Shown: positions 1,659 through 4,087 of the stretch, one piece after another
Layout of the letters: every line of letters begins with the position of its first letter
Position numbering within the stretch: position 1 is the stretch's first letter
Translations under genes and position numbers: made by a program
Source: Zygnema circumcarinatum SAG 698-1b
Taxonomy: Eukaryota; Plantae; Zygnematophyceae
Length of the DNA stretch: 10,743 nt
NCBI GenBank assembly: GCA_037447605.1
Contig: JBBHKD010000083.1
Coordinates: 1 to 10,743, forward strand
Direction of reading: 5' to 3'
Notes under the pieces: generated by a model
Database searches by the model: none
What the model saw: only the letters and a program-made list of their open reading frames with translations
What the model was told of the DNA's origin: nothing

Positions 1659-4087
<2,429 letters not shown>

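Follow-up and report, generated by a model that had tools for sequence, protein, structure and literature searches.

The stretch of DNA analysed here, referred to below as the window (10,743 nucleotides (nt) from Zygnema circumcarinatum), is a ribosomal DNA (rDNA) repeat carried on the minus strand, and its 18S (small-subunit, SSU) gene is interrupted close to its 3' end by a group I intron at site S1506. The subject of this report is a 16-nt segment of that intron, which is complementary to part of the 3' exon, and which a first-pass annotation had proposed to capture the 3' strand of helix 45 and so to free the first exon nucleotides for splicing. The parts of the intron and of the repeat are as follows, exon positions being counted from the first nucleotide of the 3' exon (+1).

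2310 to 2314, minus: last five nt of the 18S 5' exon, AAGGU, forming the 5' strand of helix P1; U2310 lies at the splice site
1690 to 2309, minus: S1506 group I intron, 620 nt, IC1-like, with omegaG at 1690, placed by Rfam RF00028 and the exon junctions
1780 to 2198, minus: catalytic core P3-P9, from the Rfam alignment
2255 to 2262, minus: internal guide sequence (IGS) GAA|GCCUU, the octamer GAAGCCUU, which is found in most of the S1506 introns collected
2263 to 2272, minus: 10-nt spacer GACACAUGCU between the element and the P10 nucleotides, facing exon +4..+10 in a partly paired internal loop (RNAduplex)
2273 to 2288, minus: the 16-nt element, antisense to exon +26..+11, the distal part of the 3'-exon guide
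1659 to 1689, minus: 3' exon, the last 31 nt of 18S, with helix 45 at +1..+22 (1689-1668) and the 3' tail at +23..+31
1664 to 1679, minus: target of the element, comprising GAA of the helix 45 loop, the complete 3' strand of that helix and four nt at the start of the tail
1691 to 1696, minus: 3'-terminal UUCACC of the intron, complementary to exon +8..+13 (GGUGAA, 1682-1677), a possible second clamp on helix 45 in a subgroup only
4087, minus: start of the SSU gene
10643 to 7314, minus: large-subunit (LSU) gene of the repeat
4088 to 7313: intergenic spacer of ~3.2 kb between the LSU gene and the next SSU gene
1305 to 1152, minus: 5.8S gene
899 to 1, minus: start of a second LSU gene

The intron was recognized by a match to Rfam RF00028 (93.2 bits with a gathering score of 50, E 1e-24), which covers model positions 1-253 and intron 2198-1780. 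Removal of 2309-1690 restores a canonical 18S 3' end, ...GUCGUAACAAGGU|UUCCGUAGGUGAACCUGCGGAAGGAUCAUUG, in which the 5' exon ends in ...GUCGUAACAAGGU at 2310 and the 3' exon, UUCCGUAGGUGAACCUGCGGAAGGAUCAUUG, occupies 1689-1659. We take the 18S 3' end to lie where homology to the canonical GGAUCAUU(A/G) end places it, and we likewise take the insertion to follow the U homologous to U1506 of E. coli 16S (AAGGU|UUCC), the numbering being carried over from the E. coli 1492-1510 primer site. The features expected of a group I intron are present: a core of P3-P9, a U at the end of the 5' exon (U2310) that pairs with G2259 of the guide, and a terminal G that is the omegaG at 1690. A sequencing run, probably of RNA, contains 91% of the sampled words of the intron, which indicates transcription only. 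The Rfam SSU match overshoots the 5' exon by 17 nt and stops inside the intron, at 2293, because the model is forced at its 3' end onto intron letters, and the true final 31 nt of 18S (1689-1659) lie outside every Rfam match.

The 16-nt complementarity and the guide strand

The element reads AUCCUUCCGCACGUUC in the intron RNA (2288-2273), and the reverse complement of exon 1679-1664 (+11..+26) is AUCCUUCCGCAGGUUC, so that 15 of 16 positions match and a single C-C mismatch faces exon +15. The first-pass annotation had reported this same pairing with this same mismatch, and re-reading the sequence gave the same result. When all 16-mers of the 31-nt 3' exon were compared with 3000 dinucleotide-preserving shuffles of the intron, the best match was 14, reached 4 times, and 15 was reached in none (p < ~3e-4), in agreement with the ~1e-4 estimated beforehand for a chance match.

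The element shares its strand with the guide and precedes the GAA by 10 nt. The guide nucleotides GCCUU (2259-2255) pair with AAGGU of the 5' exon as P1, with a U.G pair at the splice site, and GAA (2262-2260) pairs either with UUC of the 3' exon (1689-1687) as P10 or with UUU at the start of the intron (2309-2307) as an extension of P1. Both the position of the element just upstream of the IGS and the two exon pairings of the IGS are as they had been described. In P10 the 3' exon is brought into register with the guide so that the second step of splicing can proceed. Taken in the 3' to 5' direction, the strand GCCUU-GAA-spacer-element lies opposite 5' exon -5..-1 and then 3' exon +1..+3, +4..+10 and +11..+26, and thus it is antisense to the sequence of the ligated exons. 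Judged by this arrangement, the 16-mer extends P10 distally, beyond an internal loop of ~7 x 10 nt, and is no independent loop motif. The first-pass annotation had instead described it as displayed in L1, the loop of P1, closed by the stems CAGC/GCUG and CAU/AUG. To call the region a loop is fair, as the isolated L1 strand folds with only -3.6 kcal/mol (RNAfold), but the two stems share G2265, cannot both form fully and are weak; ‘extended P10’ is the better description, and we offer it as a refinement.

Conservation and site specificity among S1506 introns

To sample other S1506 introns, metagenome contigs were searched with a pattern consisting of omegaG followed by exon +1..+20, which is independent of L1 and is impossible in an uninterrupted 18S, where U precedes UUCC. 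The search yielded at least 120 loci; 94 of the listed loci have the end of the 5' exon upstream and represent complete S1506 insertions of 198-1568 nt, and removal of near-duplicates left 84 introns, or 85 including that of the window. Core blocks R and S of IC1, as they appear in the Rfam alignment of the window, are both present with at most 2 mismatches in 61 of the 72 introns of at least 300 nt. The hosts are diverse, the last 18S nucleotide being A, G, U or C and the first internal transcribed spacer (ITS1) having dozens of distinct starts, and the introns themselves are highly divergent (median 9-mer Jaccard 0.011). A scan of viral contigs for the same junction pattern gave 0 matches.

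Segments of 40 nt were slid over each entire intron and scored with RNAduplex against exon +4..+30, and a site was called guide-adjacent if the global optimum was immediately followed by the guide motif RRR(G/A)YCY, usually GAAGCCUU. The intron-wide best site of complementarity to the 3' exon lies directly 5' of the guide in 60 of 85 introns and spans about +2..+28. Guide-adjacent optima were found in 59 of the 72 introns of at least 300 nt (48 of 59 at 300-750 nt, 11 of 13 above 750 nt) and in 1 of 13 below 300 nt, and they occur in all four host classes, as defined by the last 18S nucleotide. An energy test was made on the 72 introns with an identifiable early guide and at least 12 nt of upstream strand: the median duplex energy was -25.8 kcal/mol, compared with -12.9 for a 5' exon decoy and ~-14 for dinucleotide shuffles, with p <=0.01 in 51 of the 72 (floor 0.005). 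Moreover, the energy of the guide strand was better than that of every equal-length downstream segment of the same intron in 56 of the 72.

The profile of pairing along the exon was taken from the 60 relatives with a guide-adjacent site. Positions +2, +3 and +5..+11 are paired in >=90% of them and +4 in only 30%; the region that matches the spacer of the window is well paired with exon +5..+11 in most relatives. Pairing dips at +12/+13, the two loop adenines of helix 45 (48% and 62%), and +14..+28 are paired in 70-100%, with 82-93% at +23..+27 and 70% at +28. An ordinary P10 would be a short helix of ~3-6 bp, and here the last paired exon position is +26 in the window and about +28 in the relatives. 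The pairing on the guide that marks a P10 is nevertheless there, as GAA 2262-2260 with UUC 1689-1687 in the window and as the paired +2 and +3 in the relatives. Because the pairing goes far beyond a few bp, we file it as an extended variant of P10, not as an ordinary one.

Whether this complementarity belongs to rDNA group I introns in general was controlled with 90 other 18S insertions in the same contigs (86 non-redundant), found through local alignment to the 18S of the window. The first 120 nt of each intron were scored against the first 30 nt of its own 3' exon, and the identical measure was applied to the S1506 introns. The other-site insertions (n = 86) gave a median z of -0.07 with 0% below -3, whereas the S1506 introns gave a median z of -3.3 with 56% below -3 (Mann-Whitney p = 3e-18). 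Since the control lacks the signal, long exon complementarity is particular to S1506 and not general to rDNA group I introns. Conservation in related S1506 introns had been set beforehand as a test of the first-pass proposal, and the proposal came through it. Its suggestion that the element arose by a recent inverted duplication of the exon has become unnecessary, the feature being old and widespread.

The control also brought to light single 18S genes that carry up to seven additional insertions of 180-1500 nt (L044, L068, L103, L106, L110 and others), with recurrent sites at positions ~567, 1003, 1124, 1172, 1218, 1273 and 1437 of the window 18S.

Four observations other than covariation point the same way, to a constraint that would act on the pairing of the RNA. 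First, substitutions were counted on identity-anchored ungapped alignments, which are unbiased between transition types. C-to-U changes opposite an exon G, which keep the pair as G.U, were seen in 50 of 255 cells, and U-to-C changes opposite an exon A, which break it, in 8 of 204; for transitions overall, 18% were wobble-compatible and 10% pair-breaking (p = 0.004, kinship ignored). An earlier wobble count was rejected as circular, its alignments having been picked by a score of Watson-Crick and G.U pairs; the asymmetry in the identity-anchored alignments is weaker and still significant. Second, in several lineages a self-complementary hairpin splits the element (for example L007, L049, L097 and L098) and the exon pairing is intact on both sides, so that a three-way junction with the exon is predicted. 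Long introns with ~500 nt inserted upstream of the element likewise keep its adjacency to the guide. Third, in the lineage of L002 and L108 (L002, L029, L055, L102, L108; intron nt 1-25) the UCCUUCC core is missing, and a continuous helix of ~15 bp (GGUUCACCUAC-UGGAA) can form with exon +1..+15, that is, with the 5' strand and loop of helix 45. Going by sequence, this lineage would sequester the 5' strand of the hairpin and not the 3' strand, an alternative solution to the same hairpin. Fourth, a search of the 5' region of the introns gave no sense copy of exon +14..+28 with which the element could pair instead.

In introns with split elements (L007, L025, L049, L058, L073, L097, L098) the halves AAUGAUCYUUCYG and GGUUCA stand 20-60 nt apart, often with a hairpin of their own between them. 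The introns of ~1 kb that have ~500-nt insertions in L1 carry the element at 560-587 (L020), 510-539 (L031), 488-514 (L043), 513-543 (L078) and 602-627 (L091). Homing-endonuclease open reading frames (ORFs) have been reported in P1 of Porphyra S1506 introns (PMC2585584), and by analogy the ~500-nt insertions seem consistent with these.

Predicted competition with helix 45

The 3' exon begins exactly at the first base of helix 45, and thus the hairpin would bury the nucleotides needed for P10. Folded alone, the 3' exon forms the helix 45 hairpin at -13.0 to -13.7 kcal/mol (RNAfold). The co-fold of the guide strand of the window with the exon reaches -28.1 kcal/mol, with a free-energy difference (ddG) of -10.8, and scrambling of the 16-mer reduces the ddG to -2.1 +/- 1.5. 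In a partition function over 676 nt (intron, exon and the start of ITS1), intron nt 22-32 pair with exon +26..+16, so that 11 of the 16 element pairs have probabilities of 0.84-1.0, and all nine pairs of helix 45 have probability 0. The 60 relatives behave similarly: the median ddG is -10.4, compared with -2.6 for shuffled guides, and helix 45 is lost from the minimum free energy (MFE) structure of the co-fold in 55 of 60. Co-folding with and without the element, a check proposed beforehand, thus predicts that the duplex replaces helix 45 when the element is intact. Conservation and modelling together support the proposal that the element would capture the 3' strand of helix 45 and free UUC for P10.

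In 20 of 85 introns (L006, L024, L027, L033, L047, L091 and others) the intron opens with 8-12 nt that repeat the start of the 3' exon (UUCCGUAGG...) exactly, which means that the P1 extension and P10 use the same guide. With such a repeat, both splice sites could also shift easily to S1512 or S1516.

A second contact with helix 45 was considered at the other end of the intron. In the MFE structure of intron plus exon, UUCACC of the window (1696-1691) pairs with exon +8..+13 (1682-1677), a predicted pairing that would place the 3' splice site in an 8-nt loop, and UCACCG forms the 3' terminus of 19 of the 85 S1506 introns. This candidate was rejected as a second clamp of general occurrence, the last 12 nt having a median of -4.1 compared with -5.7 in upstream control segments.

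Proposed role of the extended guide and related systems

The segment combines complementarity to the exon, placement on the guide strand, conservation, site specificity and a predicted thermodynamic dominance over helix 45. We consider it probable that S1506 introns typically possess an unusually long 3'-exon guide, an extended P10 of which this segment forms the distal portion, and that this guide outcompetes helix 45 for the sake of exon ligation. Before the first step, the guide nucleotides would hold the intron's own 5' end as the P1 extension. While the 3' exon is being transcribed or thereafter, the guide would capture the 3' strand of helix 45, aided by pairing with the tail outside the hairpin, and the 5' strand (UUCCGUAGG), from +1, would be freed to dock on the guide as P10. 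Exon ligation would follow, and helix 45 would re-form only after ligation and release of the intron. The guide would in this way switch partner between the two splicing steps, and the 20 of 85 introns whose start is identical to that of the exon fit such a switch. The same duplex would give the free intron recognition of a target of ~30 nt and a toehold on the 18S tail for reverse splicing.

Several points weigh against this reading. By the criterion used, 13 of 72 full-size introns are without an IGS-adjacent site, as are 12 of 13 introns below 300 nt, about half of which begin with a short UCCUUCC motif; because some introns do without it, the element is not indispensable. The substitution asymmetry was computed without phylogeny or correction for mutation bias, pair-breaking G-to-A changes are not rare (24 of 102, partly a product of the ungapped alignment), and the invariance of the exon leaves no room for true covariation. 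The only variant exon (L084, G-to-U at +24) is not accompanied by a compensating change in the element, a single case (n = 1). The energies are nearest-neighbour values that ignore the P1/P10 pseudoknot, tertiary structure, kinetics or co-transcriptional order, and proteins. A duplex of ~25 bp should moreover slow the release of the ligated exons, a cost that the model leaves over, and splicing at these junctions in this organism is something that we infer from the sequence.

A bolder form of the extended-guide reading is put forward only tentatively. It is conceivable that the intron carries a natural antisense guide of ~25-30 nt against the entire 18S 3' terminus, which seeds on the single-stranded tail, unzips helix 45 by toehold-mediated strand displacement and lays both exon ends on one continuous guide, and that this drives the second step, specific reverse splicing and sliding to S1512/S1516. 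If true, a single toehold device would explain the success and the wide distribution of the S1506 intron lineage.

Alternatively, the pairing may have been selected mainly for mobility: the excised intron would invade the 18S 3' end through the toehold on the tail, displace the strand of helix 45 and reverse-splice into intron-less rRNA, with help in forward splicing being secondary. Over ~30 nt the guide is antisense to the ligated exons, which are the substrate of reverse splicing, and its pairing reaches the tail at +23..+28, which is needless if a hairpin has only to be opened in cis. Introns in the 1506-1521 region are generally without homing-endonuclease ORFs (PMC3160393), spread of introns between S1506 and S1516 via reverse splicing has been proposed earlier (PMC1299323), and the introns that start like their 3' exon could easily slide to neighbouring sites. 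However, the complete pathway of reverse splicing, reverse transcription and integration has never been demonstrated (PMC3679873), and such rare events are under weak selection next to splicing, on which every transcript depends. One pairing serves both directions and sequence data cannot tell them apart; we regard mobility as the main target of selection as rather unlikely.

The duplex could also serve as a checkpoint in ribosome biogenesis, the unspliced intron blocking helix 45, dimethylation by Dim1 and cleavage at site D until splicing is complete. The predicted duplex excludes helix 45 in the 55 relatives mentioned above and in the window, and it covers the tail beside the 18S 3' end. 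These effects would, however, be an inevitable by-effect of the pairing, with no independent sign of selection; the two loop adenines modified by Dim1 are the least-paired positions (0.48 and 0.62), and little would be gained because unspliced 18S is non-functional anyway. A checkpoint as the function of the element is improbable, and any effects on Dim1 methylation and site-D cleavage are pure conjecture.

Very improbable, too, is that the element pairs elsewhere and matches the 3' exon only as a by-product. The core UCCUUCC could indeed pair with the GGAAGGA that lies in the 5' exon, 19-25 nt before the splice site, and belongs to the 3' strand of helix 44. This target was rejected, since the duplex energies with the 5' exon stay at background (the median of -12.9 as against -25.8) and the conserved flanks, GAU before the core and GCAG after it, match the 3' exon and not the 5' exon. 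An intron-internal partner was rejected as well: a search of the intron 5' region for a sense copy of +14..+28 gave 2 sense and 24 antisense matches at >=11/15, and no alternative partner was found there. Finally, it is scarcely credible that the complementarity is without function, whether a match by chance or the neutral remnant of an inverted duplication of exon sequence. Although the first observation came from one copy only and short complementarities do arise by chance, the observed match was reached in 0 of 3000 shuffles; the feature occupies a constant position in 60 of the 85 introns, which are highly divergent and drift in sequence while complementarity is kept; and the 86 control introns at other sites lack the signal.

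To our knowledge, the way in which rRNA group I introns cope with the folding of their exons is known mainly from the P(-1)/P1 case of the Tetrahymena LSU intron. There, a hairpin in the exon, P(-1), reportedly competes with P1 and affects splicing and reverse splicing (Woodson and co-workers). The S1506 introns face an equivalent problem, namely a stable hairpin of the rRNA exon beside the splice site that competes with the pairing of exon and guide. In Tetrahymena, however, this hairpin belongs to the 5' exon, and other exon sequences resolve it, whereas at S1506 it is in the 3' exon and the anti-hairpin strand is encoded by the intron.

Compared with an ordinary P10, the S1506 pairing uses the same guide strand, lies immediately 5' of the P1 part and runs antiparallel to the 3' exon from +1; it is likewise mutually exclusive with the P1 extension and has the same presumed role of aligning the 3' exon for the second step. 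It differs in length, with ~25-28 paired positions (16 in the distal block of the window) that take in nearly the whole 31-nt exon, and in that it invades a stable rRNA hairpin and is interrupted in the window by an internal loop. Such an extension is missing from introns at the other 18S sites examined. The optimum quoted for P10 in engineered ribozymes is ~6 bp (PMC6155759), and a combined P1/P10 of 11 bp in the S1389 intron, which disrupts helix 28, has been called ‘strong’ (PMC8395846).

The arrangement resembles the extended guide sequence (EGS) of engineered trans-splicing ribozymes, in which a P1 extension of ~3 bp, an internal loop and an antisense duplex raise efficiency and specificity (PMC6155759). 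The EGS of engineered Tetrahymena and Azoarcus ribozymes has the same three-part layout on the 5' side of the guide, and the window shows all three parts: 3 bp of UUU/GAA or UUC/GAA, a 7 x 10 loop (2272-2263 versus +4..+10) and a 16-bp duplex. An EGS is artificial, and its target is the portion of the substrate that is lost in the reaction; the S1506 element, by contrast, occurs naturally and works in cis, and its target, the 3' exon, is retained.

The nearest published natural observation that we found is the ‘PM’ pairing of Harris and Rogers (2011), in which the middle of degenerate Phialophora introns of 63-75 nt at 18S 1516 pairs with the 3' exon (PMC3160393). It too is a pairing of an intron segment with the 3' exon beyond P10 at the extreme 18S 3' end, and it was proposed to stabilize the intron. 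It belongs to tiny S1516 introns without most of the core and involves the intron ‘middle’, whereas the window intron is 620 nt long, lies at S1506 and has its pairing segment in L1 beside the guide; we set the two apart by their descriptions. The account of ‘PM’ mentions neither conservation in full-size S1506 introns nor competition with helix 45. Introns at 1506-1521 were reported to be related (PMC3160393). We found no earlier description of a conserved long 3'-exon guide in S1506 introns; older subscription literature or structure figures may hold one, and its novelty is provisional.

The lineage at this insertion site thus appears to encode its own anti-hairpin strand, with a P10 four to five times the usual length. 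If true, this would provide a mutable model of competition by exon structure in the second splicing step, and a precedent in nature for the EGS designs at which ribozyme engineering arrived empirically. It would also explain how reverse splicing attains its specificity and how the reported kinship of the 1506-1521 introns came about, and it would predict a coupling of splicing to late 40S maturation, through folding of helix 45, Dim1 methylation and 3'-end cleavage. On the practical side, the 18S 3' end is the site of common 18S/ITS primers, and since S1506 introns contain its reverse complement in nearly identical form, internal priming is possible.

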